Source: Kudoa neothunni
Taxonomy: Eukaryota; Animalia; Cnidaria
NCBI GenBank assembly: GCA_964304625.1
Contig: OZ199840.1
Location: 5,073,200-5,137,199, forward strand
Direction: 5' to 3'
Length of the DNA: 64,000 nt
Shown: in pieces, positions 814-63,679 of the stretch
How the letters are laid out: every line of letters begins with the position of its first letter
How positions within the stretch are numbered: position 1 is the first letter of the stretch
The notes under the pieces: model-generated
The model's database searches: none
Told to the model about the DNA's origin: nothing
What the model saw: only the letters and a program-made list of their open reading frames with translations
Program-made: the position numbers and the translations under genes

Positions 814-1697
814 CTAAATTATTACTTCTACCCTCAATTCAATACCACCTTGATTCAACAATATATTGGTCATTTATAAAATATAATATTATCAGTTGTC
901 TGATAATAATTTTTAAATATACGCTGTGGAAGATTGAAAGCCGCTTGAAATTGCTCCTCCGTACACATGCTTACAAAGTAGCACTGATTTTGTGCTTGGT
1001 CATAACACTTCGATACACCGTTCTAAATATGAATAATAGTAAGTGCATTAATATTGAATTTTTTACTAAATTTTCATTTAATGTAAATATTGTAGATATT
1101 TAATGAAAATTAATTATAAATTTATTGTACCTGCTCTTTTGTCTCCATGCAATGTGAATGAAATATTATCTATTTGATTACAACCATTTTTATTGGTGGA
1201 TAATATATTTACTAAGCACGGTACACATGTTTCTTTGAAATGAAAGCTTTCAACTATGAAATATTTAAAAATTCATTTTGGCAATATCGCTATATATATT
1301 TAAGATACTTCGGTAAATGTTACATTCAGTGTAGGTTTTGCAAAGTATATTTTTATATGGAAACTTATTGATAAAAAGGGGAAGATTTTCCCACGCTTCC
1401 TCAGCAGCTTTCTTCTGAAAGGAATTATAGCTAATATACTCAACCAATTACTTTGTTGACTTCATTAAATTCAGTCAAATTTTCAATATCGCATAATGAA
1501 CTTCCTAACGTAAATACAGCCCAAGAAGATAAAGTGAACTATATTTTTTAAAAAAAAACAATTATAAATTGAAAACTTCAATTTGTGCTTTGACAGTAAA
1601 CGATAAACCAATGATGATTACTAAAGCCAATACAGGAAAAATTTACAAACTATATACTACGAATCATTTCTATGTTGTAATAATAAAACCGACTCAT
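814..1697 (-). CDS. G1: putative secreted Cys-rich protein of the 8-exon family (last exon boundary uncertain)
   Basis: Manual GT-AG splicing gives MSRFYYYNIEMI|LIIIGLSFTVKAQIE|FTLSSWAVFTLGSSLCDIENLTEFNEVNK|KKAAEEAWENLPLFINKFPYKNILCKTYTECNIYR|IESFHFKETCVPCL|IIFHSHCMETKEQ|NGVSKCYDQAQNQCYFVSMCTEEQFQAAFNLPQ|... ORF-track 1265..1447 contains exon 4. Phases 1-0-0-1-0-0-1 match the paralogs. Exon 8 has several possible acceptors/frames between ~744 and ~900. Confidence 0.85.
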
Positions 1698-2338
1698 TAA
1701 TTCTTTCTTACAAATTTTAAGCGATTCCCGTAGCCACTCGCCAATTAATATAATCGTATATATTTTCCACTATTTTATGGTAAGATATACACATTTAAAT
1801 GCCGTCCGATTATAACATAAAGTGGCGCTTCATTTATTTAAATAATAGAGGAGATATTTATTTTAACATCTCGTTTAACAATTTTGATGAATTTATTACT
1901 TATTTTAATAACTGTAAAAGATTATCTTCCAATTTCCTTTTTTCAACTAATGATAAATATAAATCAAATTAAAAAGCTAAAGACAGATATGATGATAGAT
2001 ATATAAATTAATATTCAAAAATTCTAATATATATCTTCATGAATGATTGAAAAAATAATCCTTTCATTAGTAACTACCAAGTTACAGAACATTGGAAAAG
2101 CCCGATTAGATAAAGGCGTAAGATTTTGGTAGATATCGCGTGTTCTTAACTTATCGTCTTGATTTGAATCACAATTTTGTTATCTCATTTATGAACGAAA
2201 AATAAATTTCACAGTTATTGTAAATCCACAATAGAATCATTAGAGTTGAATTAGTATTTTTTAAAATAATAACAAGAATGGGTAATTAAAAAATAAATAT
2301 ATATTACCATATCGAATGTATCCACACTTGATAATAGA

Positions 2339-4546
2339 TTAATCTTCCGAGCTTCTCTGGAGTCCATTGGAACCCAATGGATGTTTGAATCAAGTTTAGA
2401 GAACCATATATTAAACCAGTTGGCTTATGGTCGCATTTATTATTCTACAAATATTATTTCTATTGAAATATTGCAGAAAGTTTTAATTTTTGCATTCATG
2501 TCAAGAAATAATCAAAAAACTTTCACAATCCTTCTTTTGGCGCCAAATGGGCCAAACGTTTTTTTTCTACCAAACGATAATGAAAAATAATTTACAATAA
2601 TTTTGAAAATTAAACAAAATTTTATAGAGAGGAAGCAGAGATAATTTAAAAAAAACTATGCGTACGTCAAATACCGATCAGTACCGACGAGAGAAATGCT
2701 GCTATAAATGGTTCATTGTGTAATATTTTGAATGGAAATGAATCCGATATAAATTTACTTTATTATATCTTTTTATCAAGTTTGTTATTATTGTCACTAT
2801 CAAGATTCTGAAGATAATAAACGCTATCGAAACATTTACGAAGATAAGGATGATATTAATTGATTCTTTGATAAACTTCAAATAACTAAAAGATTGAAAA
2901 CAAATATTTTTCAAAGTATCCAGGTTCAACTTTTTATATTGCAAACAGAATCACCTTCTTTGCTGATCATTCCTCATATTTTATGGTGAATCTATTTTCT
3001 CAACTGTTATTTCAAACATTAACACGTATACCAACTTTAATTATCTGAATTATTTGAAGACTTTTCAAAACAAGATTTGTTAGTTAATTTGGGAATCCAT
3101 AGTTGTATTCCTATTCTTAAATCTTAATTAGAATGATTCAAATTGTTTTGGAGTGTTGGAAAGCGAGAGGATATTTTTCGAGAGATTATGATATTAAATA
3201 GGTTTAATCAAATTTTGAGAGTCATTCATTAGGAAGAATTCAAAACCAGAGAAGCTTGAAGAATAATGGATAAGTTCATCATTATTTATAGTAATTTTTA
3301 GGGGTTGGAAATATTGTCGTTCCGACTTTATTACCCCCAGGAAAGTTTGACCATTGACGAGCAACTATTTGCTTTTAGGGAAAATTTACCTCCGCGCTGT
3401 ATTTATATACCATCCAAGCCGGCACTTTAACGAATTAAGTAGTTTCTCCTTACCAATCTCAAGACCAAGTACACTCATAACTCTCCTATGTATTTGGATA
3501 AAAATAATAACGAAACGTCGGAAAATATTGAGGAGATATTGTTCTAGATCTTGTGTCATCATTAATGCAAAGTGGGAGAAATATAATTTGTTAAAATTTC
3601 TTTATTTCTGTTTCAATTTCCAAGAATTCTTACGTGATGAATGACTGGAACGATCCGAAATAATTAAAAAGATATTAAAATTATCTAAAAAAGAATTCAA
3701 AACGGGAAGTTTCGGTATATTTTTGTTTAATCAAAAATTAATACTAATCTCCTATGTTCTTATAAAAGGTAACGCAGCTTTACTACTAGCAACCTCCAGT
3801 TCATTACTAATGTTGAAGATACAGCCTGAAAAAATCTGTTGTTGATCTGGAATCTAATTGTTGAAAACGAGGAGTGGTAACAATGGATCATATTATTGCT
3901 ACAACGAATGTAAAAAGTAAATTAATCGATGATCGACAGTAGTGTTCTTCATTGTGGTTGGTGTCAGCTTGATTAATTCATTTTAACTTAATAAGACTGT
4001 TTTCTATGGTCGCGATTGTTCGAGAATTAAGTTTCTAGAAGAGTTTGAAGATGCTTTGGTGTAGAATTATGTTCAGATAAACAAAATCCGCGTTAATACA
4101 AATTATAATTGTACGATAGAATTAATTTGTCGCGAGTGATGCTGTTCTGGTTCGAGATCTCAAGACAGAAAAGCGAGGATTTTCTGTTTGTAGAGTCATC
4201 TGTAATGAATGTAGTGCAAAAGTTGTTTTCCTGATATTTTGTAATATAAAAAACTAAAATAATATAAATATCTCGCATTTTATGTATTTGGAATAATTTT
4301 TATTGCCGGTATTACTGGGCATGATTATTAAGAAATTAATTTAACCTTTTAGATGTTTCGTTAATTATAGTTAACAACCGGCGTTGTTATAATTTTGCTA
4401 TTTTTCAAGATTTTATCGATAGTTTTATTTCATACTTTAGAAAATTACTTATTACGTTTTTTCCATAATTCAAATTAAAAAGAGAGTCCAATAGATCTCC
4501 CAAAAAAGAATGTGTAAAGTCGATTTTCAGGCGCTCGGAAGGTTAT
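2339..4546 (+). mobile_element. Decayed piggyBac element with pseudo-transposase
   Basis: Ends TTAA-TCTTCCGAGC ... GCTCGGAAGG-TTAT (imperfect TIR, degenerate TTAA). Interrupted transposase motifs: DIFREIMILNRFNQILRVIH (~3170), LTIDEQLFAFR (~3350), RGVVTMDH and INR*STVVFFIVVGVSLINSF (~3870-3985). Confidence 0.8.
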
Positions 4547-6438: not shown

Positions 6439-7362
6439 CTAGGAAATTGGAACCGATTCAATCAAAACTTTCATTTTGTATGATTCTCCATTATGAATCT
6501 TTTTAATTGTGTCCACTAGGTAATTAGAACAATATTAAACTCATTGAAATAAAATTAATAATATAATTTTCTAATTTCGAATAAATTACTATTTGATGTT
6601 TTACTTATTATATTTATGGGGTTGGCGGGAACTTGATATTCATCACACATACCAACGTATAAGCATTGATTTTCGGCTTGATATAAACATTCAAATTTAC
6701 TCTAAATAAAATTTCCATCAAAAATGGAAATATCGTAAATATTTTTTATTTTTTTATTTTTAAAATTATAATTTTATGATACTTTATCTTGATACTCAAC
6801 ACAATACCAGTAAAAAACTATCTTTAATTATCAATAAGTATATACAGAAAAACATGTAAATTACAAGGCATGGCGAACATCCCACATTTTTATAAAATTG
6901 TATAACTTAAATAATAGTTATATGAGATAACGAATAATTTATATGATAATTATTATTTCATACTTATATCATATTCACATTTAGCGTAAACTAAGCAAAA
7001 AGTATCGATATTTGGATATTTATTTATGAATTCATTCATATCTAGCCATGCTTTGTACGTAATGGTTACCTATATCAATATATCAAGTAATTCATATACA
7101 ATCATACTTTATCGACTTCTTTAAATGATTTTATTTGTTTGATCTTAATCAAAGAGAGTCCAACTGACATTTTGGACGAAGTAGATAAGAATAACTAAAA
7201 TTATAATATTATAGACATTTTTAAAACTAACCTTTGAATGAATATTGGAATATGAAATATAGTTCAAATTAGTCACTAAATTTATACCTAAAAATTAACG
7301 GAGCCAAATGTAATAAACTTTCATTTACAAATAAAAACACAGCAATAAGGGCATAAGTTCAT
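6439..7362 (-). CDS. G2: putative secreted Cys-rich protein of the 8-exon family
   Basis: Spliced: MNLCPYCCVFI|CINLVTNLNYISYSNIHSK|LFLSTSSKMSVGLSLIKIKQIKSFKEVDK|VTITYKAWLDMNEFINKYPNIDTFCLVYAKCEYDI|IIQFYKNVGCSPCL|IVFYWYCVEYQDK|SKFECLYQAENQCLYVGMCDEYQVPANPINII|MDTIKKIHNGESYKMKVLIESVPIS*. All introns GT-AG, family phases. Confidence 0.88.
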
Positions 7363-10260: not shown

Positions 10261-10578
10261 AAATATTTCACAATATCAGTTTGTAATGGAAAAATGTCAA
10301 AAATTCAAGATTGGAAAATTTTTGTACAAAGATATAGGTACCAGCAAAATCTAAATAAAAAAGTTACCAATTGTGTGTATCTCAAATTAATCTTATTGTC
10401 CATCAGATTCTGTATGCAGAAGTTAAATGTATAATATCTTAAGGTTCTTAGACATTTTATATTAATTTTATTGAATTTTTTAATGTAAAAATTAATTTTA
10501 CATCGTATTATAGTCATTGAGTATCGTTATTAACAATCTTTCGAGGTGAAGATAACCTGTTTCTTTTCGAAAGAGTTA

Positions 10579-11591: not shown

Positions 11592-14500
11592 TGTACTAAA
11601 TATGAAATTCTCATTCTATTAATTCCCGCATTTAATATTAAGTTATCGCTAGGGAGACATTGTGGCAACGTATAGAAATCAGTTTCCACATTTAAATTTT
11701 AGAATACATAAAGGATGCTTTACTCAATTGGGTGTTAAGGCATGTAAAAATGATTACGAGGGACCAGGAGATACATATAGATTTCAACAACTATCGTATA
11801 TGTCTGAAAGGTAATATTAAATGTAAATTCAAGCTGGATCAAAATTATAAAATAAACAAAAATAAATTATTCACCAGGGTCGATCTAGTTCGCTGTGAGT
11901 GTTTTTGATTGCAGTCACAATTCGACATTTTTACCGCATATAATGCCTTTAATAGAGTTTATATTTTATTTTTCATTAAGGATATTGTTTGTCGTTATTT
12001 CAAACGAAGCTAAACATACAAAACGTTCTAATCACGAGTCATAACGAATAATACTTAATCTCACCGAAGCAGATCATCGAGGATTAATTATGCAGTAATT
12101 AATTGTTTTCTCAATATTTATAGGCAGAATACCCCCATATTTTTCACATAACTTTATAATAATTATATGAATACAATAAAAGAATAAAAGTCTGGGGTCA
12201 TTTTTACCCCAAATGCCCGTTGCGTTGGAGGGTGGTTTTATTTTCATTTGTTAGAGAGTTAATATTACTAATTATGAGGAATTAAATATTTTAGCAAAGA
12301 ATATTATATTTGATGTATCTTTAAAAACTGAATTAATCGATATCAATAAAAATCGTGAGAATGTTCATTTTATCGCATACAAATGTATTAATTTTATCAC
12401 TAAAATGTTTCTTGAATTCATATAAATTTATATAAAATATTTCAAATACGCTGAAATATCATTTTTAACTGTCATTGTTAAAGAAATCAGATAAACTTTG
12501 TATTAATTAACTGATATTGTATATTATTGTTCGTATGTTCATTGTATTTCTGAGGAATCTCAAGTGATAATTTATGCGAATAATTACTTAGGAGATATTT
12601 TATGTATTGAATTAACCCATTTAGTTAGCAAATTGCGCATTCGAATAAACAAAATTAAGGATTTTTTGTAATATTTTTTATTAAAAGTAAGTTAACAATG
12701 AAATTTTTACATATAATATAGTGAATTAAAATAATGATGACTGGATAAAAAGTTATCAGTGTTTAAAGCTTATTAACGCATTGTGATTTACTATAAAAGA
12801 ATTTTCATTTTATCTCGAATAGAATAATTATATCAAATAATAAATATTTAAGGTTATTTTAAATAAATAGTTTATATCTTATCGATTTAAAACAATACTT
12901 TTGAAAAAAAAACTTGTAATTTTTAAGAAATTTAATGACCTAAATTTTTCTCATATTATATAAAATGTTATAAAAATTTTCACTAAAAAAATCATTGTTT
13001 TTATACATATGAAATTAAATATAACGATTTTGGTTGTCGTCAATTTAAAAGTTTATGATATCGAGTGTTTAACCTTTTTATATAAAATCCACGAATCATT
13101 GATTATAAAATATATTTGTTTAATTTAAGTAATGATAAATTTTATGAGGAATATATATTTGTGTATTATTAAAAAAAAATTAGAAATATTATTTAATAAC
13201 TTCATCATAATTTAATAATATATACAAATATTTTTTTAACACAAATCTTATAACTCCTTTTGAAATTATTACAACTTATCAACATAATATTAAAGATAAA
13301 AGATACGACGAACACTATTTAAAGGCCGAGTAAATCGCAATTCATTTTTTATATTTTGGATAAATGATGATTTATCCAAATCTCCAATGTTTGGCATTAA
13401 TTTGTAAATTAATTGTGATATAATTATTTCATCTTAAATTAAATATTTTATAGTCATTCTTTGCAATGTTATTTGCCTATACTATTCCTGAAGAAAAGGT
13501 TTTGATTTTTGTGGATATCCTTGATTATTGATTATAGTTTCAACTATTACCAACTGTGAGAAAGGGTGTAGAAAGTGTTGTGGATTACTTCGAAAACACC
13601 AGATAATGATATCCATACAAGGGTAGGTTAATAATAATATTTCTCTAATTTTTTTATAAGATTATAGCTTCAATCTATCGAGAACATCCAGATGACTTAA
13701 TCAATGCATTGTTTCTCAAATGAAGTGGCTTACAAAAAATTCGCTTGCACTCATTTATTTTTATGTCATAATAATTACGGTAAAACATAAAAATTATTTT
13801 TACATTATCATTCTAAATAGTGACATTAATGAATCTCCCAGAGAAATGTATTCCATGTTTAGTATATTTATTCATTACTTAATTGGCTAGTAATATCCAA
13901 AAATAGGCGATCCAAATAGAAACAATAAAGCATAAATATGTATAATTACACAATAATAGGAATTATAACATAAAAGTTTACATTTTTATCACAAAATAAA
14001 TCCAAAATATTTCTAATTTTTTTTCACAATTAAAAACTTAGCCGCAAACACTTTGGGCAACATTCTCCTCGCGTGCAATGCAGGGATATGTCTTGGTGTA
14101 CCTACGAACAAACAAAATGGGTTTTTTGGCCTTATAATGGTATATAATATTTGAATTTGTATATTAAAAATGATATGGAAATACGAGAGTTTATTATTAT
14201 TTTATTAATTATTTAAAATTAAATTATAGATAGTGCAACTGGTGTGACAAGGACACAAGAAACCAACCAAACTATTATACCTGCTCGTAAGAACTGTATC
14301 AATGACCTTGAAATCTCGAAAGTGGTCATTAATTACGATGATTAATTGAATTTAGTAGAAAAAATATAAAAATTTTCAGAAAATCTATAATTTGTTTTGA
14401 TTTATAGAATTTTTTCCGAAATAAAAATACAACAATTTAATTAGAATGATATATTATCTTACAATAATTCGATTTAAAAAAATATTAAAAATCAATATGG

Positions 14501-14780
14501 TTTTTAAATGCATAATTTTTATGTTTTAATACGCTAAATGAAAAAACTACCAATATACGCATTAAAATCCCTATCGTGATGGGGAAATTATTTTAAATTT
14601 ACCTCGTACACTAATCACCAATGGATTAATTTCATAGGATGATTTCTCAGTATCATTCAAACCTGAGGGATAAACTCACCCGTGCTCATAAATAATTGGA
14701 ATTAATCCAAGATAATCATTACAAATTTTACGTAGATCATCCTTTTTTAAATAAACATGAAGCTTCAATAGCCGATTCAA
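11592..14780 (+). repeat. Direct segmental duplication, copy 1 (~3.2 kb; partner 26086-29232)
   Basis: Colinear from TGTACTAAATATGAAATTCTC to GCCGATTCAA. Contains G3 and a piggyBac-like end (GGGGTCATTTTTACCCC ... GAGAGTTAA, ~12194-12262). Confidence 0.97.
13364..14345 (+). pseudogene. G3: divergent family member, near-duplicate of G5; frameshifted as assembled (pseudogene or consensus error)
   Basis: Same exon structure as G5. Single-base insertions in exons 2, 3, 4 and 7 (e.g. CGAAAACACC vs CGAAACACC, TTGTTTCTC vs TTGTTCTC). Corrected frame has FACTHLFLC, EKCIPCL, CRDMSWC and ends DLEISKVVINYDD*. Confidence 0.8.
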
Positions 14781-14790: not shown

Positions 14791-16435
14791 ATGGTAAAGT
14801 ATGTGACTCCAGAAAAACACCGGCTTGGGTCCATTTTTTTGCGCTTTTTCTTTAACGATTATCAATAACAAATCAAATGAATACTGAGTGCAAATATTGA
14901 GCTCAAATAAATTACTTTTAAATTTTTCCCCTAATTCCTATTCGACTACAGTCCGGTACACGTGTACTCCATATCATTTTTGCAATAAATACCGAAAAAT
15001 AGCTGATTACTTGCTTATTTTATCCAAATTAGTATATTATAGCCATTATTTAAATGTTCTTAATATTTAAATTCCAAATTTAGTGTAGTAGGCCTTTTAA
15101 ATATGCTTGTCAAATATTAAGAAGTAATGTGTCATCTAGCTTTATTTATAATGTCAAATTAACTTTAAAACCATTTAGTAATATCTATTAGTATTCATTT
15201 TAGTTTATAAATTTTTTATTAGTACATTATTATCAGTGCAGTCATTTTTAGACACAAATTACTTGCGAAATTGAAACTAACAATAATTATATTAATCGTA
15301 CATTGATATTTTGGGTTATAAAATCAAAGAAAGACATTAATAAAAAGTTTTCAATACGTATTTTCTTTGTCTGAAGATATTAAACTGGAGAACTTTTTAC
15401 AAATAATAAGAATATGTATATTTATATTTATATAATTATTTTTAATGCAACATAAGGCGTATAAATTAATAACCATTACAATATTAATTTATTTGGACAA
15501 AAATACTTGTTTCAATAAAATGATGTTTTTACTATTGTTAAAGTATATAATTAAGCTTTCTAATGAAATAATTTATAATTGTAATCTGCATGTTACGCTA
15601 AAATCAATCGTCGCAACAACTATCATGCTGTTAACGCGCAGTTCAAATGTTGTATAATGAATTGCACGTATGGCCAATTTTATGAAGATTTACTCGTTCA
15701 AATTTTCTTATAAATTTTAATATAGACTTTTCTAAACGATTATATATTTTATTATTGTTAATTTGTTTGTTCAACTCACGAAAATCATACTAGAGAAAAA
15801 AATACGGTTTCAAGGAACACACTAATTTCACACCTTAAGTCGTTATTCCACGATAGATAAGTAATGTTTTATAGCAATGATTGAAGATATAATCAATGTG
15901 CTTTCTCTCACAGCACGAAGTTTCTGTCATTAGTCTCCTTACATCTAATTTTCTCTTTTTCTAAAGTAAGGGTTTCAAAATCACAACAATTAGAATCACA
16001 TCTTTTTGCAGCAGCTTTAAGATAACCTTTTGTTAATAATTTGATAAAATAACCTATCATGATCATTAATTAAACAGAAAAAGTCATAGTTCCCTTTAAA
16101 CTTAAAAGTTCCATTATCGCGATTTTCACATGGAAAATAAACTCAGAAAAATTTAATATCATTTTTATTAAAACTAATGTAATATAGAAATTTCAGATAA
16201 TTTGCCAAATAACTAAATAATCAGCTATTTTTCGGTGTTTATTGCAAAACGATATGGATTACACGTATACCAGACTGTAGTCGAATAGGAAATTAGGGAA
16301 AAATTTAAAAGTAATTTATTTGAGCTCAATATTTGCACTCAGTATTCATTTGATTTGTTATTGATAATCGTTAAAGTAAAAACGTAAAAAAATGGACCTA
16401 AGCTGATGTTTTCTGGAGTCACGTAACTTTACCAT
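14791..16435. mobile_element. Non-autonomous DNA transposon with ~230 bp terminal inverted repeats (possibly Merlin-derived)
   Basis: 14791-~15025 is the imperfect reverse complement of ~16205-16435 (ATGGTAAAGT..GTGACTCCAGAAAA ... TTTTCTGGAGTCAC..ACTTTACCAT). No intact ORF inside and no clear TSD. Confidence 0.85.
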
Positions 16436-18173: not shown

Positions 18174-19178
18174 TTAACACAAGGATTTGTTGAACTCTAC
18201 AAATTGATAGTATTGGTTAATCAATTTATTGATTTTGTGTACGCTAAAATTTTGTATGTTTCGTGAGATAAGGTCATGTATTAAGTCGTATTTTAGTTCC
18301 TGGTTATTCCAAGACATAATTATGCACATGGAAGATAATAATTTGAATATTTCACTTGTTTTCTAATGTGATAAAAATGGTATTTTTTATGTTTTGTTGG
18401 GATTCTGACAGCCGGTATTTGGGATTCCTCACAGAAGCCAACATAAAAACACTGGTTTTCAGCTTGATACAAGCATAGATGCGTATTCTGGAATTTCAGA
18501 GAAATTATGTTTGATGTTTTAATTATTATTTAGGAATTTTCGTAAATTAATTAATTATATGAGTTTAGAAAATGATTGATTAAAAAATATATATACTTTT
18601 TCTTCATACTCCATGCAATGTATGTAAAATACTATCTATTTGCATAAAAAAATAATAAAGTAAATTGAATTTACTATGCAAGGGGAACACGTGGATTGAT
18701 GATGAAAATACAAAACTACCGAAAATAAATAGAGTCACATATATTATTATTATTATTAGTTTTGTAAAATATAGTAGCGATTACTTATATTATAATCACA
18801 TTGTACGTATATCAAACATAGCACATGAATATTTGGATATTTATTTATGAATTCGTCCATATCCATCCATGCTTCAAACGTAATCTTTTGCTATAGGACA
18901 TTAAAAAAAATTGAAAATAAAATTACTTTATTGACTTCTTCAAAAGATTTCAACGACGAAATTTTAATTAATGATTGTCCAAGTGAATATCTTGCTGAAG
19001 TTCTTAGAAAAACCTAATAGAATTTATCAACGAATCCATACAATATATACGTATTTGTGCCCCATAACGTAACAAAAAACGTATAAGTTAATTGCTAAAT
19101 AATATAAAAAAATTAAAATATCATATCATATTAAGATGTACTTATAAATCTCCCTAAAAATAAAAGGAACGCGCTCAT
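18174..19178 (-). CDS. G4: putative secreted Cys-rich protein of the 8-exon family (closest to G2)
   Basis: Spliced: MSAFLLFLGRFI|TINLYVFCYVMGHKY|VFLRTSARYSLGQSLIKISSLKSFEEVNK|QKITFEAWMDMDEFINKYPNIHVLCLIYVQCDYNI|ILYFHHQSTCSPCI|IVFYIHCMEYEEK|NTHLCLYQAENQCFYVGFCEESQIPAVRIPTKHKKYHFYHIRKQ|ELKYDLIHDLISRNIQNFSVHKINKLINQYYQFVEFNKSLC*. The last intron reads as phase 0, unlike the paralogs. Confidence 0.88.
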
Positions 19179-22945: not shown

Positions 22946-25293
22946 TTAACCCGTTCGTAATCAAATTTTTTATTTTATTTCACGATTTTTTTTAATATAT
23001 TACAGGCACTCAATATCCTGTATTTAATGATTTTATTGTGATACAATCTAATTAGACGTATAAATTCGGTTGATTTTAATGTGAGTACCGAGGTGGACAT
23101 TTGACATTGGTGGTAAAACAACGATTTAGAGCATTGAATTGCGCACAAAAACAAACGAAATAAACTTTAAAATTTCTTAGATATTTGGAATATGATAACT
23201 TAAAAATCAGTCTCAATCATTCACAATACAACAAAAGGAATAATATTTAATGCATTTAAATCGAGTTTTTCGTTGGCATATTCCACATCTGTATTTAATT
23301 GACACTATTTCAGGAAAATGCCTACGTTATCCGGTCGAATATGATTACTGAGAGGAAGCGTTCTTATTTTAGATCATTCATATTTATCATCAATTTTTTC
23401 CGAGGAATTATTAAGAAACGGTCTATCACGTTTTTTGGGGATCACTTGCTCTTTGGTAATAACGAAGACTTTCACTTATTTTCAATGAAAAATTCGTCAA
23501 GTCTAGTATATCCCTCTTAGGAAATTTTCGAATCGTACAATTTCGTATATGTAATAACCACGCATTTATAAAACATGTATTAAGGGACCAGAAGAAAATT
23601 CGCATGTAAGATTTCTTACGTTTAAGTTTCATTACGCAGAGCGATATCAACATATCTCAAAGATCCATTCCTCCCATATTTTGGTTATATTCAGCTACTA
23701 CTGCAGGTCATGGAATGTCAATCATGACTTTTTTTAAGCGTTCAAATCTTTTTGTCATTTTAAACGGTCAATTTTGAAGAATGGGTTGATGAAGGAGCTA
23801 CGAGTATTCCATCAAACCTACGCGTTATATAAATATTATTATTAAAGTCGTGCACACTTGCCAATGCTCTTCGTCCCAGGGTTTTTAAATCGGTCCCATT
23901 CTGTAATGGATATCCCTATACGTTATTCTTGCGAATGGTTACCACAGAATAAGTGCTCCTTTGTTTTAATAGAATTTGAAGGGTAATGGATGTAAACCAG
24001 TTGTCTAAGTAGATAAAATAAGTTATGAACAAGGGTAAACTCTCGCACAACTTTATAACAAAGTCATTGAATACTAGACCACAACTTTTGACCACATCAG
24101 GTTTTTTCCCATCGGACAGATAAAACTCATGCACGAGCCCCTTAACTCCACACCTCGCGAACATTTTGAATCACTATTTCGTCGGTTTCTTTGGAACAGA
24201 TTATTTCGCTTTACACCTACCTTTGAATGGAATAATTTTCTCGTCAACTGAATTCTTTCGTTCACATTCAACTTTCAAACAATTTGTTCTTATAGAATCC
24301 AAAACCGGTCGAATCTTTGCAAATTTATCATAATCTGAAGAATTCGGATATGTGATAATTTTTGAATTATCAATGAAGTGTAAATATTCTGAAATATTTT
24401 CGAAGTGGGTTCTCGATATAAACTCAGAAACAGGTGGATAATTTAAAGTTTTAGACCAATCGCAACGATATCTTGGAATTTTGACAATTCCCATGATAAT
24501 CAACGTTCCTATAAATTTTTTTATATCTTCTCTAACATCTCGAAAACTAGAATTTTGCTTAACCGAATATAAATTTGTTTGTTCAATAATTAACAGAATC
24601 CGGTGTTTATTGAAAGAGAAGTTGAAATAACCTATCTGTAAAACGAGATCGGTAACTTCACAAACAACAATATCATTCTTCTCCAAATTATTTGGCTTAT
24701 ATCCAAAGGTTTCACTTATATTCCACTTAATGGTTGGTACAACTTCCTCTTAGGAACAATCTGAATCTGGATTATTTTCAGTGTACACCTCAAGCATCCT
24801 TCGTTCTAGATTTTGTGTCCCAAAATCTTCAACGTATTCTTCTGGATCAGAAATATCGGCGTCAGGAGATATCACAATTCCAGTTGTCGTATTTCTCCTG
24901 TTTGAACATTTAAAAACAAACTCGTGATTCCTGGGTTCGAAAGCCGGAGATCCACGTATGCCAAATGCCCATCCTAGTACCCACATGTTGATTAGTCATT
25001 ATCTTTTGATAGGTTGCTATATATCTTATAAAATATAACTCATTGAACCACATTTTAACGTTTCGTAATTTGAATTTCTTATATTCCCTGTTAATTTTTT
25101 GTAAGAATTACTATTAAACATATTATAAATGTTAGATCTCTTAGTTTACATAATCGGACATTACTGATAAAAAACATTTAACTTTTAAAAAATGTAATAA
25201 TTCAACAAATTATAGAAATAAATATAACGTGCATGTTTTTGGGATGTTTAATTTTTTAGGTATTAGGGTGGACATTTGGCATGAAAGGGTTAA
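22946..25293 (-). mobile_element. Decayed piggyBac element with frameshifted PGBD3-like transposase
   Basis: TTAA-CCCGTTC ... GAAAGGG-TTAA ends; GGTGGACATTTG repeat near both ends. ORF fragments 24201-24686 (EQTNLY, SVDEKIIPFKGR), 23916-24164 (IYLDNWFTS) and 23426-23653 (INAWLL). Confidence 0.92.
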
Positions 25294-43405: not shown

Positions 43406-44312
43406 TTATATATTATAACGTAATTTTATATTTTTTAGGATTAATCTTCTGAGACGATTTTCTGTGTGTAGAATTATTTGTGATGTATTATTCTCATCCC
43501 CATTAAATAGAGAACTTGTACCTAGGAGTATGTTATACATATATTTCAAAATATTTCTAAAACGCACAAAATAAACAAACACCTTTTCTTATGCGTCTGT
43601 GAAAACAAAATTTTCTTTTGCACATTTTTCCTTTGATAACCCTTAAACAAATCTCGAAATACAACTAAAAAAATTGGTATAATTTAAAAAAAAATATATT
43701 TAAAATTTTTAATACATTGTCATCGTTAAAATTTGTTAGACACATTAAAAAGAAAACATTCTAAACCAATATTATTAATAAAATAATTCATTAAAGATTA
43801 CGATGCAAGGCATGCAAGTGTCTGGTATATTCAATGCTACAACTATAAAATATATAAACAACATTTTTTATTCCTAAATAATTTAAATACTTAAATTTCG
43901 AAGGCAACTAGCGTAATATGAACATAATTGGTTGGGGTTCAGGAATTCATTTATGAATGTTCCTAATTCACCTTCTGCTTTATCAATGGTGCTGTCCTAA
44001 ATTATTAGGTGATAAAACAATTTACATAAATATTATGATTACCAAATTTTCTTCATTTGTACGATAGGCGTTTCTTAAAATTTCAAGACTGTTCAATAGT
44101 TGATATCGAGTTTCCCTTGTATATGAATACTAAAGAAATTATTGAATTTCAATCCAAAAACAACTTGGGCCGTAAGGTTGTTTTTAGTAACCTCGTATGC
44201 ATCAGATATATTCATTGTGCCTTCGTAAATATGAAATCATTCAAATATATTACGAATCAAATAAATATAAATACAGAAGCAATTAAATAAAAAAAAAAAT
44301 AAAGAAGTTCAT
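43406..44312 (-). CDS. G8: family member (one-base shift in an 11-T run of exon 1 as assembled)
   Basis: Exons 2-8: CTMNISDAYEVTKNNLTAQ|YSYTRETRYQLLNSLEILRNAYRTNEENL|DSTIDKAEGELGTFINEFLNPNQLCSYYASCLRNL|IVALNIPDTCMPCI|NVFFLMCLTNFNDDN|LYFEICLRVIKGKMCKRKFCFHRRIRK|GTSSLFNGDENNTSQIILHTENRLRRLILKNIKLRYNI*. Exon 7 may contain compensating indels. Confidence 0.82.
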
Positions 44313-45873: not shown

Positions 45874-47781
45874 AGAATCAATTTTAGCATTAGATGAACT
45901 ATTAAAAAATATTAACTATTCATTAAAAATAGTATTTATAATTTTTATCCTTTTATACATTAACATATAAATGAAATTGTTTATTTGTCAATTTTTTAAT
46001 TTTGATTAATGTTAATTGAAATATTCGTGGATATAATGAAAATATTTGGGGTTAAGTTCATGTTTGTTTTTATTTTATTTTAAATTAATTTATGAGATTA
46101 ATTTAAAAAATAATTATTCTATTATTAAATATTAATGCCCATAATTTATCATTATTTAGTCCATTATTTAAAAAAATTTAATTGAGTTATATTAAACAAT
46201 TCCCAAAATATTCTTTAATATTTTTATTTTTAAATTATAATAAAAATAAAATTATGACAAATTAAAGGTCGACGATCTTTTCGAATGAGGTGCAGAACAG
46301 ACATTCTTAAATCTAAAACAAGTAAGTACTAAAATTAATTTATAAAAATTATTCTTAATTCAAATTTTGAATTTAAATAGATAAATAAAAATTTATAAAA
46401 GTCTTTTAAAGTATAAAAATAAGGCGAATAGAACGTATTATATTCCAATAATTTTCACTTCCAATTTGATCATCCTGTAAATTACTTGTCGTAGAAATAT
46501 TTATTTGACCACACCAAATAACATGATATTTACTTATGTGTCTTTTCAAAAATAATTCATACTTTATAGAAATAATTTTAACGTTATTTTAACAGTCATA
46601 TGTATTTCGGTTTCTTCATTAAATAAAAATCAATTCTAGTTATTGAAAATATTCATATCGACAACATATTAACATTTGGAAAAGTTATCTATAAAAAAAT
46701 TAAATATCATTTAGATACTTTAGATATCAAGGAAAATTTGTCTCAGTCAATGCATAGGGGACCGGATGGATAAAACTGACGCGCCGTAGATAGTTCGCTG
46801 CTATTATAAATAATCAATGCTACATACAAGTTTTCTTTAAAAAATTATAACTTTTACGTAAAATAGTTGATGATTCAGCATTTAAAAATATTTTTATTAT
46901 GTAAATAATATTTATTAATAATAACAAAAATTTCACAAAATATTGTATGAAAGGTTGAAATACAAATGATTTAAAATATTTTTTGTCAACTTTAATACTG
47001 GTCCTAATATAAATAATTAAATAGAGAAAATAACAATTAAAATATAGTGTAAGTTTAAAAATCCAAACGAACAATGTTTAAACTAAAGAATTCATTATTT
47101 TTCTTAATTCTTATTTCATTCTAAGATTACTTTAGTTTGTTTTAAAATTTGAGAGTGGTCATCATTCAAACTAATAAATTTACAAGGTATTTCATTTTAT
47201 TATCACCTCATAAAATTGTATAATTGATTAAATCACTATGAAAATTCTCATTCTTTACGTGTTTCAAAAAATTTCACTAAATAATAATAATATAATTGAT
47301 TTTATTTATTAATTTTGATTAAATAATTTTATATAATTTTTTATATATCGCCATATTATAAATAAGATAAAATTTGAATTAAATATTCTTATAATCTATA
47401 CACATTTAAAAAATCAATTTAAAAAAATCAACTATTTCTCATAATGAAAATAATGTTCATTATTAGGTAATTAAAAAATACGTAATTTAATGTAATTTAT
47501 CCGCCAAAAAAATAATAATTTTAATTATTAATGTTTTGTAATAAAGCAAGAGCTATTTTATTCAGTTTCTAATATTTAATTAAATAAATAACTGTGTTTC
47601 ACTAAATTACTTGAACGTAATTTAAAATTACATATATACAATATCATTTTTTAATCAAAAATTGAATTTATAGCATAAATAATAATCTATAATTTCATGG
47701 TTTCATATTTTATTATTTAAATTATTCATTAATAAAATATTTATATAAACTTTTAATAATCCAAAAATACATTAGCCATAC

Positions 47782-48484
47782 CTAAGTCTTTAGGATAGCA
47801 ATACTTATCTTTAGTGCACTTTTGTTTCCGAAATCATTTTACATGCAAGCTCATATATCTAATTTATGCAAAATCGTATCATCATTTGTGTACATTCCCT
47901 TTAACTTACGGGAGCATTTTCGAATTTAGAAATACATTTGAGAAAGAATGATTGCTAAAAATATTTTATTCTTATATAATCAAAAGATATATTACAATGC
48001 ATGGCATGCAAGTATATGGTATATTCCAGAGCCTAACTATTTATTTAAAATAGTTTTAATAAGATATACAATTATATATACTTAAATTTGCTACACATCT
48101 GGCATAATAGGAGCATAACTGATTTGGTTTCGGGAAAATCGTTTACAAACATTACCACGTCACCCATAGCTTTATCAATCACAATATCCTAGAATATTTA
48201 TAATAAAAAACCATCATAAAGAAATTACTAAATTTTCCTTGTTTAAGTGATAAGCCATTTTTATAATTATTAATGAATCCAATAATATATCCTTAGCTTC
48301 TCTTCCCAAATAGTACTATGACCATTAATTGAATTAGAAATATATCATTACTTTATTCGTAAAGATTGTTTTTTATTAATGTTGTTTGGTGTAATTGCAA
48401 CAATTATGACTAATTAGTATTTTTAAAATTCAAAATAAGCAATTTACATGTGAGTTGTAAATAATATAAAACGATGGACCACAT
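47782..48484 (-). pseudogene. G9: family member with homopolymer frameshifts as assembled; exon 8 unresolved (lies below 47700)
   Basis: MWSIVLYYLQLT|FIIVAITPNNINK(NNLTNK)|YYLGREAKDILLDSLIIIKMAYHLNKENL|DIVIDKAMGDVVMFVNDF(PKPNQLCSYYARCVANL)|IRLWNIPYTCMPCI|QSFFLKCISKFENAP|IYELACKMISETK(CTKDKYCYPKDL). Bracketed parts need removal of extra bases in homopolymer runs. Confidence 0.8.
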
Positions 48485-48595: not shown

Positions 48596-50010
48596 TTATC
48601 CCTTCCGGTACCAACTGGGGTATTTGAGGGATCCCACATTATCTATTTTGTTTCTAAATCCAAATATCAGCTTCTGATAGTCTTCAAAGTTTGATTTATC
48701 TCTAATACTATTATTTCGATATTTTAATCAAAAGGAGTTTTTTATAATATAATTAATTCGAATGAATAGATTCCAAAATCATACTACAGTTAATTTTGAA
48801 TGTATATGATTATTTTCTAATGTTACATATTTGTTTTATAAATATTAAAAATAGCCTTATCATTCGAAAAATTTAATATTCTCCGTGGTATTGCGTGAAA
48901 AAAAGGTGTAACTTTCTAAATATTACTGCTAATGGATTAACGAGGATTTATCCGACTAAGCCTTGCACGTAACCTTTCTTGCGGACATTGAGATAACTTT
49001 TAAATTACTTTTTTGATGTAACCGTAATATTTAGTATGAGAATTGATCAAACTATTGAATAACATTGGATGTTGAAAAAATTATTATAGATTTTTCCTCG
49101 GTAATTAATGATAGCTGCTCAGAATATGAAATATCTGAATCAGATGATTGAGTTATTAGTGATATAGACATTGATGAAGACTTTGAAAGTGACCTTAATT
49201 TCGCTTAAATAGACCCCAATAATGATTCTATTTTTCCTTCTCAATCTGATCTTGAATGACCCAAAAGAATTAGTTCGAAAACTAAATCACATAACATCGT
49301 TACTTCACCATCAGGCACTTTAGAAGAAACCAAAAATATAACGTCCATTTTTTATGCCTTTGAGTTGTTTATCTCGAAAGACATAAATGATGAGATAGTA
49401 AAATACACCGACAAATATAATGAAGAAACTAAACCAGAGAAACACGCAACAATATCTAAAGATGAAATAAAAGCATTTATAGGCGTAATTATTGCTACTG
49501 GTCGTTCATATGGTAAGATGCTTGCACATAGGAATATGCGGGATGGTAGTCCATTGTCCAAATAATTATTCTTCTCCACAGTAATGCCCAGAAACAGGTT
49601 CACTTATATTTATAGATAAATCCATTTCGATGATAAAACAAATAGAATTTATCGGTTTCAAACTACAAATGACAAATATGAACCTAGTCTTCAAGGTATT
49701 TAATGAAAATTGCCTAAAGTATTATTCATCAGGCACGCATATTACGGTCGACGAAAGGTTAGGGTTGGTATGGTTTCGGAGTAAATGCCCATTTTGTGTA
49801 TATATGAATAGCAAGCCCGGACGATTTGGAATCGAACTTTGGGTGGCTGCAGACACGGAAACGTCATACCTACTGAAGCTTCAGCCTTATACTGGAAAGG
49901 TTGGTGGAATAAAGATAAATAATCAGTGCTAGAGATGTTCCAACTGTTTCAAATCTGTTTGCACAAAACAAATGGGAAAAAGATACATTATTTATTGTTT
50001 TGATTGTACC
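48596..50010 (+). mobile_element. Internally deleted piggyBac related to the element at 29989
   Basis: TTAT-CCCTTCCGGTAC end. ORFs 49365-49565 and 49630-49932 (FNENCLKYYSSGTHITVDERL...KPGRFGIELWVAADTETSYLL) closely match 31420-31848, then jump to RCSNCFKSVCTKQ. Right end not found. Confidence 0.88.
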
Positions 50011-51667: not shown

Positions 51668-52628
51668 TTAAAATGAAAATGATATTTTTTGGACTTTTAA
51701 ATGATTTATATTAGGTGATGTAGGACTTTTGGAGCCGCCATTTTGGGGAATGCCTGAATTCCATCCTATCAAATTAAAATATAAAACAATAATGCAATAT
51801 AAATTATGTTGTAATATGTTACATAAATTTAGTTTTATTGTAAGAATAAATATTACTTAATGTTTCGTGTTTGGGAGGTGTGAATACTGCTATTTGTTCA
51901 CTAGTACACATTCCTGCAACTTTGCACTCACGTTTAGAATTATAAACACAGATAGCCTCAAACTAAAATATTTTAAAATATATTACACAATAATATATTA
52001 TTTTTTATAAATTTTTGTATTAAAGTTGTCAATATATATAAAGAATAATGTTATTTATACCATCGCCCCTATCTGAATACAATTTTTGTAGAAAATTATC
52101 TATAAAAAATTGAATATTCTATTTTTAGAAATAGGAATACCACGCAAGGGACACAAGTAACTTTCGGATATAGCGATATTACTAAATTGGATATTCAATT
52201 AATATTATTATAAAATCATCATCTGTTATTAAGTAAAATACATTCTTGATCTTGACATTCACCATATCGCTCACAAATTTCATTAAGTCTAGGGTACTGA
52301 TTTATAAATATCGTCAAATCATTTCTAGCTTCATCGCAAAATGGCTTCTTCAAAGAAATTAAATCAATCAATAAATTTCTTAAACCTTGTCAAATAGTGG
52401 ATACACTTGCATATGTTCAATTTCGTTTATCGATATCAATATTATATTTTGAATCCCTTCGGATAATGTGAGCTAGAGTTTTAAATATTTTTTTGAAAAA
52501 AAGTAAATAAAATAAACCTGAGAATAATAAATATTAAAATAGCACGTTAATGCTAAATTTAATATTAAATTCTTATGATGGAATATTCATCAATAACCTA
52601 ACAGAGTAACGAAAATATTTTCCAACAT
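51668..52628 (-). CDS. G10: putative secreted Cys-rich protein of the 8-exon family
   Basis: Spliced: MLENIFVTLL|ALTCYFNIYYSQ|LTLSEGIQNIILISINEIEHMQVYPLFDK|KPFCDEARNDLTIFINQYPRLNEICERYGECQDQE|LISLYPKVTCVPCV|IIFYKNCIQIGAM|FEAICVYNSKRECKVAGMCTSEQIAVFTPPKHETL|RWNSGIPQNGGSKSPTSPNINHLKVQKISFSF*. Confidence 0.92.
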
Positions 52629-56235: not shown

Positions 56236-57163
56236 TTAAAATTCAAATGTAATTTTTTCGACTTCCAATTCTTTAAGATCAGGGGAATTTAGGAGTGATT
56301 TCACGCTATCAAGCTTTGGACTGCCTAAATTACAATCAAGACGAATACATTATACAATTTTATTAGAAAAATACATTAAATTACATTATAAAATATTTTT
56401 TAATTAATCCAGGAATTTATACCTTGTGTTGGTGGATCAGGAGGCGGCGGAAAAGTTGATATTTGCTGTCTAGTACACATTTCTGCTATTTTACATTCGT
56501 GTTTCGAGTTGTAAATGCACATTAATTTGCTCTAGAATATAAAATAAATAAAACTTCCTTCATAAACTGATTATATATGTATTTATAACTATATTTATAC
56601 CACCAATCCTTTTAGAATACAGTTCTGATAAAATATTATCTATATATAAATGTAAACAATTATATAAATAATTTAATGATTTTACCACACAAGGGACACA
56701 AGTGACCTTTGGTTTTAACGATATTACTAAAGTATATTTAAGGCATTTAATCGATAATAATATGTATTGACATACGTGTTCCCTTTTCACATTCACCATA
56801 TCGATCACAAAGTTCAGGGTGTTTAGGATATTTATTTATAAATCCAGGTAAATCTTTTCTTGCTTCATCGCATAATGGTTTCTAAAATGAATGAGGGGCA
56901 TAATTCATCACATTTTAACTTTGTTAAATGTGGGAAAATGTTCCGTATTTTCTATTTCGGAAAGCGACATCAATACTAAATGTTCGACTGGGTCGGATAA
57001 CTTTAGCTAAATTATAATATTGGTTGAAAATTATGTATAATTATAAAACGTACCTGAGCGACATTGATGTTAAATAAACATGAAAATACTATATATATTA
57101 CTTATATTTGTGGTAAACTATGTACCAATTACCGAACAATGCAACACAAATGGGGAAAAACAT
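56236..57163 (-). CDS. G11: putative secreted Cys-rich protein of the 8-exon family (closest to G10)
   Basis: Spliced: MFFPICVALF|VFSCLFNINVAQ|LKLSDPVEHLVLMSLSEIENTEHFPTFNK|KPLCDEARKDLPGFINKYPKHPELCDRYGECEKGT|LISLKPKVTCVPCV|IIFYQNCILKGLV|SKLMCIYNSKHECKIAEMCTRQQISTFPPPPDPPTQ|GSPKLDSVKSLLNSPDLKELEVEKITFEF*. Confidence 0.92.
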
Positions 57164-61700: not shown

Positions 61701-62777
61701 TAAATATATGAGGTTTAGAAAATAATACAACAAATATTCAATGAAATTTGAAAAATTATGTCTTATTTTATGTATAAATTTTTAGTCGATAAATTATAAA
61801 TTTCATTTTTAGATAAAAATGCACTTAATATCAAACTTGAAAATTTTTAATGTAAATTACCAAAAATACATAAATGTAGAAAAAATAGTCAATTCGGGGT
61901 CTTAAATACCACAGTCAGTACCCAGTACCGGTACGGATAATGTAGTTTAGTTTTTATAAATATTGAATTATTTAAACTACACATGCAAAAAATATTATTT
62001 TGCTTTATCAAACATTTCCTTGTTAATTATTTATTTGAAATTGGATATTAATTTAAAAATAATACCATTATTATTTAATATTATTTTTTTCAAATAAATG
62101 TTTAAAATTCATATTTTAAAATAAATAACGTGTATTTTATAAAATAGTACTTCTTTTGCTTATAATAATATATTTTTTATAATAATAACTCCGCATTATT
62201 CCATTTCGTGTTTTAAATTGATAAATCTGATCTAACCATGATTACACATAAGATCAAAAATTACCGTAATTATTGAGTAAATACGTAAATGCTTAATTTT
62301 TTAATGCGGAACCATTAATCTTAAATATTATATTTAGTTAAACCTAACACTATTTTTATATTACCATTAGAAAATTCATAGTTTTGTATTTTTGTAAAAT
62401 TAATAGTCTTATTTTTAATACATTAGAATATAGATAATCGATATAATAAACTATAAATATAACTATATTTATAGTTTATTGATTCTCACATAAAATATTA
62501 ATTAATTTTTATTTATATTAAGGGATCCTTCTTATGAATTAATCAAAAATTCTTTTATAATAATTTTAATTTATTAATTACTACTGATATTGAATAAATG
62601 GGATTAAATAAAATCATTTTTCATAAATAATTTGAGAAATAAAATATTATTCAATATAAGTTTATAATTGTTGTTTTTATTAATGTGATATCATTATAAT
62701 TAATTAAATGTAAATAAAGAAATTATTTCATCTAGAATAACTAAATAATTTTTTGTTAATTTGTAATGTTTTCATCT

Positions 62778-63679
62778 TCAGTTATTGTTGTATATTAATT
62801 CTACTCCTTTGATTTTCAAATCAGGATATAATTGCAGCATATCGGTTATATCTTGTAAAGTATTAGAAATTTTATTTTCACCTATAATGTATATATTAGT
62901 TTACTATAGTATATGTGTGTGTATATATTCAAAAATTACTATGTAATATATTTTGTGGACAAAAGGTATCTTTAATACATTTATGCTTGGCGATTTGATA
63001 GCATATTTTTTCCTCCTTTCGTAAAAAAATTAGAATCAATCATTGAACGATAAGTAATAACGGTATTTTTTAAATTGTCCTTCATTTGTGTGTTGCTAAT
63101 GAACTTTTCTTCTCTAGAATTTTTGTCTCGTGTTGGATCCATGCAAATTAAATGGTTCACTAACTATTAAATATAATAAAACAATTAAATTAAATATTAC
63201 CAAGCAAGGCATACACTCTACAGGTACTAAAACCTCTAAAACTAAAAAGAAAGGCATTAATAAACATATTAATGTATTTCATGCCTTGGTTTTGAGAACA
63301 TTTAAAATGATAAGCACATAGATCATTCGGTTCTGGAAATTTATTTACGAATCGATTTATACCTGTTCTGGCCTCCAACATTACGTGGTTCTTTGGTAAA
63401 TAAAAGTAAAAATTCAAATAAAATAAATTACGAGTTTCTCATCCTCATCGCCATATGAATTATGTATATAAATTAATGCTTGACTTATCTGCATTTGAGC
63501 TGGGATTCGAACCACAAACTGCACTAATTATTGTTAAATTTTTACAACAATTACTTGCTCATGTTTTATAGCAAAAATATTCCCCATCGTACCATAATCT
63601 AACGCAATCACAACTAAAAGTAATCTTATTATTTGTTGTCCGTAAAATAACTACAAAAAACAAAATATATTAAATTCAT
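62778..63679 (-). CDS. G12: putative secreted Cys-rich protein of the 8-exon family with extended exon 6
   Basis: Spliced: MNLIYFVF|FVIALDYGTMGNIFAIKHEQ|FVVRIPAQMQISQALIYIHNSYGDEDEKL|NHVMLEARTGINRFVNKFPEPNDLCAYHFKCSQNQ|VLEVLVPVECMPCL|LVNHLICMDPTRDKNSREEKFISNTQMKDNLKNT|EEKICYQIAKHKCIKDTFCPQNILH|SENKISNTLQDITDMLQLYPDLKIKGVELIYNNN*. Intron 4 requires a GC donor. Confidence 0.9.

Follow-up and report, generated by a model that had tools for sequence, protein, structure and literature searches.

Twelve small-exon loci in the K. neothunni genome

We analyzed a 64,000-nucleotide stretch of DNA (hereafter the window) from the tuna muscle parasite Kudoa neothunni. All 12 of the small tandem loci proposed in a first-pass annotation are present in this window (Table 1); they extend from the first gene's stop codon (G1, position 814) to the ATG of the last one (G12, position 63679). 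That annotation had counted 12 genes, of which ten are open loci but two, G3 and G9, are frameshifted pseudogenes. Five of the ten open loci are canonical throughout, and the other five each have a single oddity (a GC donor in two, and a changed 3' end, an ambiguous 5' end, or an early stop in one each).

Table 1. Positions, exon models, and status of the loci in the window (exons in order of transcription)
Locus	Span	Strand	Exons	Status
G1	814-1697	-	1661-1697, 1577-1620, 1452-1538, 1309-1414, 1213-1253, 1131-1169, 923-1022, 814-848	Intact, 8 exons, 9-Cys subfamily; introns all GT-AG, frame open; second ATG of exon 1 possible as alternative start
G2	6439-7362	-	7329-7362 (tentative), 7232-7287 (tentative), 7108-7194, 6964-7069, 6865-6905, 6783-6821, 6590-6701, 6439-6515	Intact; exons 1-2 tentative
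G3	13454-14369	+		Divergent member, pseudogene; paralogue of G5, ~90% identical
G4	18320-19178	-	19142-19178, 19042-19094, 18927-19013, 18785-18890, 18675-18715, 18597-18635, last 18320-18487 up to stop	Frame open; 3' end altered
G5	27821-28827	+	27821-27857 (tentative), 27908-27951, 27991-28074 (84 nt), 28120-28237 (118 nt), 28279-28319 (41 nt, CxPC), 28366-28398, 28501-28597, last 28688-28716 (early stop) or 28718-28827 (alternative acceptor, C-terminal strand retained)	Divergent member
G6	32903-33924	-	33900-33924, 33811-33845, 33671-33757, 33528-33633, 33424-33464, 33340-33378, 33125-33230, 32903-33015	Intact, 8 exons; introns all GT-AG
G7	40095-41016	-	40977-41016, 40883-40938, 40759-40845, 40612-40717, 40519-40559, 40435-40476, 40304-40385, 40095-40210	Frame open; GC donor at intron 7
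G8	43406-44129	-	Exons 3-8: 44043-44129, 43891-43996, 43802-43842, 43716-43760, 43583-43652, 43406-43521	Exons 3-8 open
G9	47771-48315	-	Exon 3, 48229-48315; 4, 48082-48188; 5, 47996-48036; 6, 47910-47954; 7, about 47771-47860	Pseudogene, two frameshifts
G10	51668-52628	-	52598-52628, 52518-52552, 52386-52472, 52242-52347, 52141-52181, 52061-52099, 51857-51962, 51668-51765	Intact, 8 exons
G11	56236-57163	-	57133-57163, 57054-57100, 56920-57006, 56776-56881, 56686-56726, 56601-56639, 56423-56531, 56236-56324	Intact, 8 exons; reference model
G12	62778-63679	-	63655-63679, 63555-63613, 63432-63518, 63285-63390, 63201-63241, 63062-63163 (102 nt), 62940-63015, 62778-62881	Frame open; GC donor at intron 4; exon 6 long

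The frame of G3 is lost because four of its exons are 1 nt off their counterparts in G5 (45/44, 85/84, 119/118, and 98/97 nt for G3/G5). In G9 the frame shifts because exon 4 has 107 nt, and a second break falls in exon 7, within Cx7Cx5C; exon 8 of this locus was looked for and not found. The open frame of G4 ends in a 168-nt last exon; there is no phase-1 donor, and the locus has neither the final intron typical of the family nor a C-terminal strand. As assembled, the upstream ATG of G8, which adjoins a run of 11 T residues, gave no exon 1-2 pair in the family phases.

Exon architecture

All ten minus-strand loci were recovered by motif and exon profiles. Exons 3-5 have lengths of 87, 106, and 41 nt with fixed intron phases, and seven of the ten minus-strand loci have one solution each for AG-(87 nt)-GT, AG-(106 nt)-GT, and AG-(41 nt)-GT, with introns of 36-69 nt. 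The same three lengths are found in G8 and G12, where a GC donor follows exon 4 of the latter; G9 has exons 3 and 5 of 87 and 41 nt on either side of its longer exon 4. When structure alone was used, by requiring an open 106-nt exon with a 41-nt exon in phase after it, nine minus-strand pairs were counted; ten shuffled versions of the window gave 0-3.

Full eight-exon models yield proteins of ~160-190 amino acids with GT-AG introns, and exon sizes range from 25 to 118 nt with a few outliers, such as the last exon of G4. G4 lacks one intron, and G7 and G12 need one GC donor each. Contrary to the first-pass annotation, G8 has L for P in F[IV]NxYP and Cx8Cx4C in exon 7. The plus-strand loci, G3 and G5, lack F[IV]NxYP; they keep the phases, Cx5C in exon 4, a 41-nt exon 5 with CxPC, and Cx5C-T-x-E-Q in exon 7.

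A 106-nt exon 4 (phase 0 to 1) is present at 36 loci in automatic or curated models, the exceptions being L026 (103 nt), G5 (118 nt), and the broken copies G9 (107 nt) and G3 (119 nt). The 41-nt exon 5 occurs at all 12 window loci and also in L029, a metagenomic scaffold of another organism that has exons of 87, 106, and 41 nt together with the Cx7Cx5C pattern and has no DNA match in this genome. Kudoa RNA reads were too few for annotation, according to the genome paper (PMC12239612); the support for splicing at the predicted junctions comes from conservation, that in a second species included.

Extent of the array

As had been suspected, the array exceeds the window: it covers C3:5.049-5.167 Mb and continues past both edges. 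A profile search of the whole genome, which the first-pass annotation had proposed, was performed on 40.26 Mb (contigs of 17.15, 12.04, and 11.05 Mb); the published K. neothunni assembly comprises 40.2 Mb in three chromosome scaffolds with an N50 of 12.0 Mb (PMC12239612). The exon-4 profile found 39 places, and 51 after broadening, which puts the copy number of the family in this genome at 51 or more. It is concentrated in a ~420-kb stretch of one chromosome. Decayed piggyBac transposases and dispersed repeats surround the array, in agreement with the transposon-rich setting already described.

Features of the predicted proteins

Two mini-exons (exons 1 and 2) encode a split hydrophobic, signal-peptide-like N terminus. 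Such an N terminus occurs at 29 of 35 loci by a hydropathy heuristic, compared with 8% of shuffled upstream sequences; the 5' exons of several copies, G2 and G8 among them, are tentative. Exons 3-4, which are predicted to be helical, terminate with F[IV]NxYP and then Cx5C. Exon 5 encodes a strand-like hydrophobic segment and the invariant CxPC, and the residues after CxPC are rich in beta-branched and aromatic side chains. Exon 7 encodes a helix with a second Cx5C, after which a linker of variable length leads to a conserved, amphipathic C-terminal strand; the alternating hydrophobic pattern is stronger at the C terminus than in the rest of the proteins (p = 3e-6). When modeled alone with AlphaFold2, exon 4 of G11 formed three helices (pLDDT 78) and exon 7 formed one helix with a tail (pLDDT 82).

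The core of the family contains six cysteines. One subfamily has two additional cysteines that covary, the first in exon 6 and the second where exon 7 begins; this pair is present in 13 members, absent from 12, and discordant in six (Fisher p = 0.001, a statistic that ignores kinship among copies that share ancestry). From the members compared, we infer that no catalytic-type residue is invariant across the family.

Lineage restriction and selection

An exon-level search of 1.84 billion representative proteins returned no full-length homologue and no named family. Exon peptides of ≥20 amino acids had no Pfam match at E values up to 10, and an exon-level PDB search had no match that names a family. 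By these searches, no named protein family appears to match the Kudoa F[IV]NxYP family at the exon level. The results support a family restricted to Kudoa or near relatives, as the first-pass annotation had supposed in calling it a lineage-specific secreted family.

The dN/dS values, a comparison also suggested there, are 0.12-0.4 among paralogues with dS above 1, and they are rough because dS is saturated. These values point to purifying selection without an obvious arms race. Age lies behind the divergence; diversifying selection is not demonstrated. The paralogues are old. Tree clades coincide with physical clusters and two to three of the 12 copies are decaying, both of which fit the birth-and-death expansion that had been proposed. 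Growth of the family would have occurred by local tandem duplication, and purifying selection would keep its members while a few decay.

Interpretation of the family

The array could in principle be a set of relics without function, or of open frames that arose by chance, as two or three of its 12 copies are broken and the assembly was made from low-coverage HiFi reads. We consider this extremely improbable, since >30 modeled paralogues with dS above 1 retain their frames, phases, and exon lengths, as does a second species, and since dN/dS is below 1. What neutral decay looks like is illustrated by G3 and G5, with frameshifts and the same identity in exons as outside them. A thiol-disulfide oxidoreductase-like protein with CxPC as its redox site, as in thioredoxin or ERp18, is very unlikely. 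The invariant proline of CxPC after a hydrophobic strand-like stretch would suit such an enzyme, and the size and signal-like N terminus may resemble those of small ER thioredoxin-fold proteins. However, the residues that follow CxPC look strand-like, unlike the helix of the thioredoxin fold; no exon has a Pfam match, although exon 5 alone does not have the length that a profile search needs; and one would not usually expect a housekeeping redox enzyme to have >50 tandem copies that diverge fast.

Saposin-like proteins (SAPLIPs) have six cysteines in the order CxxC..C..C..Cx5C and a four- to five-helix bundle closed by terminal disulfides. The Kudoa proteins could be a permuted or compacted (SAPLIP or swaposin-type) version that binds lipids or acts on membranes, in host lipid scavenging or membrane damage. 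Both groups are small, secreted, helical, and disulfide-bonded, with CxxC and Cx5C motifs. As at the saposin C terminus, the predicted helices of exons 4 and 7 carry the first Cys of Cx5C in their last turns, with the second Cys in the tail; exons 5-7 of the 8-Cys subfamily have the SAPLIP cysteine order; and in three members (G6, G10, and G11) exon 4 contains C-x20-C-x5-C ahead of CxPC, a swaposin-like order. In contrast, the 6-Cys members lack the middle pair, exons 5-7 place six cysteines over ~40 residues, far fewer than the roughly 75-80 of a saposin domain, and the extra N-terminal helical exon, the strand-like stretch after CxPC, and the C-terminal strand are unlike saposins. Searched against all six frames of the whole genome at E values up to 10, SapB_1 (PF05184) and SapB_2 (PF03489) found no family locus; they also matched no exon peptide (≥20 amino acids), and PDB saposin chains did not match the exon-4 or exon-7 profiles at E values up to 10. 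We judge a saposin-like identity to be unlikely.

A structural role, in which co-expressed paralogues assemble into the wall or matrix of the spore shell valves or polar capsule, is possible but rather doubtful. The C-terminal strand of one unit would extend the sheet of its neighbor, and the units would be cross-linked through their cysteines, by analogy with the hardening of the nematocyst wall. The conservation of this strand after a linker of variable length is consistent with such assembly, as are the odd number of cysteines (nine) downstream of the signal-like N terminus in several members, a Cys-richness that suits an oxidizing extracellular structure more than host cytosol, and the age and purifying selection of the paralogues. 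Minicollagens and NOWA of the nematocyst or polar capsule wall are likewise secreted, Cys-rich cnidarian proteins with possible disulfide-exchange cross-linking. Their domain has regular CxxxC repeats ending in CC and flanking Gly-X-Y repeats, but neither this cysteine pattern nor collagen repeats occur in an alignment of 27 Kudoa members, and the surface residues are highly divergent for a lattice-forming protein.

The reading that we prefer, with a probability of about 0.72, is a real and old secreted multigene family, restricted to Kudoa or near relatives, that grew in tandem and has a non-enzymatic scaffold role. Because no catalytic-type residue is invariant, we read the proteins as exported scaffolds that are stabilized by disulfides and vary at their surfaces. 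Their site of action would be extracellular, either on the spore or where parasite and host meet, and the C-terminal strand would dock to a partner; we infer this extracellular scaffold and docking role from the predicted features. A more specific proposal, which we hold to be quite improbable, is that the family has its own fold and builds the envelope of the Kudoa spore, the polar capsule, or a host-facing coat, by C-terminal strand donation followed by locking through disulfide exchange. If true, this would mean that a parasitic cnidarian has a self-assembly system of a new kind.

Comparison with known systems

To our knowledge, there is hardly any information on the material from which Kudoa makes its spores or on the products that it exports into fish muscle, and myxozoan genomes are full of uncharacterized lineage-specific genes. 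This family is one of the clearer candidates for a Kudoa export or spore-building role, and its importance is potential. As its short exons are easily missed by ORF-based or protein-hint annotation, exon profiles can be used to locate these genes in other Kudoa genomes.

Insect chemosensory and odorant-binding proteins are small, secreted, helical proteins that occur in tandem arrays and diverge strongly save for a cysteine frame (Cx6C, CxxC loops). They are like the Kudoa family by description, but they are found only in arthropods, would not be expected to resemble it in sequence, and lack the C-terminal strand. Giardia-type VSPs have many CXXC motifs, one transmembrane domain, a short conserved tail, and an ectodomain that alone has 300-700 amino acids, whereas the Kudoa proteins have a single CxPC, no transmembrane domain or other hydrophobic span past the N terminus, and ~180 amino acids. 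MEDLE, SKSR, and FLGN of Cryptosporidium, an intracellular parasite, are secreted multigene families named for their motifs. VSP-like genes have been reported in Sphaerospora molnari (bioRxiv 10.64898/2026.02.11.705288). The Kudoa family has no homology to any of these Cryptosporidium or S. molnari families, and, unlike theirs, its copies are old and seem to be under purifying selection; what it shares with them is restriction to a lineage, a predicted signal peptide, clustering, a short motif with a cysteine frame, and a presumed function at the host interface.

Twelve loci of an eight-exon gene family

A six-frame scan of the window for the F[IV]NxYP motif identified nine minus-strand places. 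At seven of the loci, only one solution was found for open exons of 87, 106, and 41 nt (exons 3, 4, and 5, respectively) with AG/GT flanks, the intron phases assigned to the family, and introns of 36–69 nt, which supports the claim of the first-pass annotation that the lengths of these exons are fixed. When exon 4/5 pairs were counted on the minus strand by structure alone, there were nine in the window compared with zero to three in each of ten window shuffles. Exon-level HMMs supplied further loci near 43.9, 48.1, and 63.3 kb, giving ten on the minus strand. Eight-exon models obtained by enumerating upstream and downstream paths have products of ∼160–190 amino acids; the stop codon of G1 (position 814) and the ATG of G12 (position 63679) form the limits of the array as it was first described.

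The two plus-strand loci, G3 and G5, were not found by the family HMM. They are carried by a segmental duplication of ∼3.2 kb (∼92% identity, ∼14.5 kb from start to start), within which the gene region is ∼90% identical. This divergence is equal inside and outside the exons, as expected for neutral decay of G3. The phases of G5 are those of the family, its exon 3 (84 nt) resembles that of other members, its exon 4 (118 nt) contains Cx5C, its exon 5 (41 nt) contains CxPC, and its exon 7 has a Cx5C-T-x-E-Q signature. Because these family features are kept in G5, the proposed count of twelve loci stands.

The state of the individual copies is summarized in the table below. The GC starts of G7 intron 7 and G12 intron 4 could represent either rare GC-AG introns or early decay. 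As assembled, G8 contains no exon 1–2 pair in the family phases beside a run of 11 T residues. The K. neothunni assembly was recovered from low-coverage HiFi reads of yellowfin tuna (PMC12239612), so single indels beside homopolymers may be errors.

Features of the window, of five paralogues (L008, L009, L010, L013, and L020), and of a metagenome scaffold (L029)
Feature	Position	Strand	Description
G1, G2, G6, G10, G11		−	Canonical throughout; G2 exons 1–2 uncertain
G3		+	Four exons each 1 base off G5 in length
G4		−	Last exon reads to stop; usual final intron and C-terminal strand absent
G5		+	Early stop in last exon; alternative acceptor would bypass it
G7	40302–40303	−	GC donor required at intron 7
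G8		−	Open from exon 3 onward
G9		−	Exon 4 of 107 nt; second frame break within exon 7
G12	63283–63284	−	GC donor required at intron 4
Segmental duplication	11592–14780, 26086–29200		Carries G3 and G5
Dispersed repeat	11592–12265, 26086–26760		∼670 bp
Inverted repeat	14814–14980, 16246–16412		167-nt arms
piggyBac-type transposase	23916–24686	−	Decayed remnant; Pfam DDE_Tnp_1_7
piggyBac-type transposase	30926–31848	−	Decayed remnant; Pfam DDE_Tnp_1_7
piggyBac-type transposase	49630–49932	+	Decayed remnant; Pfam DDE_Tnp_1_7
Stop-free intron 4	Within L008:1008–1244		Paralogue
Stop-free intron 4	Within L009:846–1115		Paralogue
Stop-free intron 4	Within L010:1002–1202		Paralogue
Stop-free intron 4	Within L013:899–1102		Paralogue
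Stop-free intron 4	Within L020:951–1148		Paralogue
Family member of second species	L029:1425–1978		ERZ28624939, sample SAMEA5316497; ends truncated in exon 7

A family member is present in a second organism

When representative proteins were searched with the exon-4 profile, the sole convincing match outside the genome was a 35-amino acid exon-4 open frame on the ENA metagenome scaffold L029. This scaffold has no DNA match to the K. neothunni genome, and its G+C content is 26%; the source organism is AT-rich and different from K. neothunni. The L029 gene has exons of 87, 106, 41, and 51 nt, and it contains the CxPC motif; its exon 6 carries a Cys and its exon 7 the Cx7Cx5C pattern. This cross-species conservation of exon boundaries is the best available proxy for transcript evidence.

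The array extends beyond the window and lies in a transposon-rich region

An exon-4 profile built from seven peptides matched 39 places in the genome, and one built from 37 peptides matched 51 (E up to 0.001), a number that is a lower bound because the profile does not pick up divergent members like G3 and G5. Nineteen of the 51 places are on the minus strand at 5.049–5.167 Mb of C3, the contig that contains the window (C3:5073200–5137199 within a 40.26-Mb assembly of four contigs, the three largest being 17.15, 12.04, and 11.05 Mb). The array therefore extends beyond both window edges, as the first-pass annotation had suspected. About 19 of the 51 places are on the plus strand of the same contig (5.316–5.469 Mb), and the smaller groups are at C3:9.20–9.23 Mb and, on two other contigs, at C1:2.956–2.994 Mb and C2:11.29–11.38 Mb, together with a few singletons. 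When 28 more loci were modeled with homology as a guide, exon 4 was nearly always 106 nt long and exon 5 nearly always 41 nt. In five paralogues, intron 4 is free of stop codons and has a length divisible by three, placing exons 4 and 5 in one open frame; intron-retaining products could arise from these genes, or this arrangement may be due to chance.

The G+C content of the window averages 24–25% (20–33% across 2-kb bins), and long open frames are nearly absent from it. The window contains three piggyBac remnants, each broken across several open frames (E of 1e-5 to 1e-29 against DDE_Tnp_1_7), and two copies of a dispersed repeat that is present on all three chromosomes in at least 40 genomic copies with 75–84% identity. 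These elements support the transposon-rich setting described for the array. The dispersed repeat is probably a non-autonomous element, and the duplicated block bearing G3 and G5 opens with it. Separately, the arms of an inverted repeat (92% complementary, 1265 nt apart) are possible termini of a DNA transposon.

The copies are old and constrained

Clades in the family tree match the physical clusters, in agreement with the prediction of local tandem duplication. This correspondence, together with the decay of G3 and G9, fits the birth-and-death mode of expansion that had been proposed. The alignment, the tree, and the dN/dS estimates were made from joined coding sequences. At least four old lineages are mixed in the window (G1/G2/G4/G6/G10/G11, G7/G8/G9, G12, and G3/G5). 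Even in the closest pairs dS is above 1, and dN/dS is 0.12–0.4 (pairwise estimates with saturated dS), indicating that the copies are old and constrained. Positive selection received no support in these pairwise estimates, in which dS is saturated, and the strong divergence among copies need not reflect diversifying selection.

Predicted anatomy and role of the protein

A hydrophobic N terminus was found at 29 of 35 loci, compared with 8% of shuffled upstream sequences. Modeled alone with AlphaFold2 (37 sequences), exon 4 is predicted to form three helices (pLDDT 78.5); in this model F[IV]NxYP runs from the last part of the second helix through the following loop, and the first Cys of Cx5C is inside the last helix with the second in the tail. 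Exon 5 encodes a hydrophobic stretch that closes with CxPC, and exon 6 opens with β-branched and aromatic residues. Exon 7 alone is predicted to form a helix and, after it, a tail with the last Cys (pLDDT 82). The cysteine core consists of six residues. The exon-6 Cys and the first exon-7 Cys, an additional pair in one subfamily, are present or absent together, suggesting that they pair with each other. The final 8–10 residues, which follow a linker whose length varies, alternate between hydrophobic and polar far more strongly than other parts of the protein do (p = 3e-6). We also considered whether a module of three exons had been duplicated within the protein; aligning its N-terminal and C-terminal halves with hhalign gave a probability of 0.7%, with only the Cx5C stretches aligning, and this candidate was rejected.

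No His, Asp, Glu, Ser, or Lys residue was seen to be invariant among the aligned family members, which counts against an enzyme. The best reading is that the protein would serve as a non-enzymatic extracellular scaffold that docks via the strand at its C terminus. The chief rival readings are a role in building the spore or capsule and a saposin-like role with lipids, the latter having some appeal in the cysteine motifs but failing both the sequence tests with Pfam models and the test of cysteine spacing.

Relation to known protein families

No named family was identified when Pfam, the PDB, and 1.84 billion proteins were searched at the level of exons, and the literature searched contains no description of such a family for Kudoa or any other myxozoan, in line with the initial failure to recognize one. 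The Pfam scan of exon peptides gave no match, the exon-4 and exon-7 profiles matched nothing in the PDB below E 0.1, and the ESM Atlas, queried with exon 4, gave no lead (scores <0.9, TPR-like helical features only). Representative proteins yielded five matches to the exon-4 profile: the 35-amino acid metagenome frame and four repeat proteins that align in short pieces, which we read as spurious. Two database proteins (P0001 and P0005) have repeats of ∼50 amino acids with the motif DHLGNE[FY]P..MC..YGI, and their E value of 5e-7 against this profile comes from several short partial matches, likewise read as spurious.

Based on these results, we conclude that the genes form a real and hitherto unnamed family of cysteine-rich proteins, with predicted secretion and a fixed structure of eight exons; there is good support for its existence, its extent, and its mode of evolution. 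Among known systems, saposins resemble the F[IV]NxYP family in their cysteine motifs, but the family differs from them in sequence and in cysteine spacing, and a whole-genome search with the saposin Pfam models matched 0 family loci.
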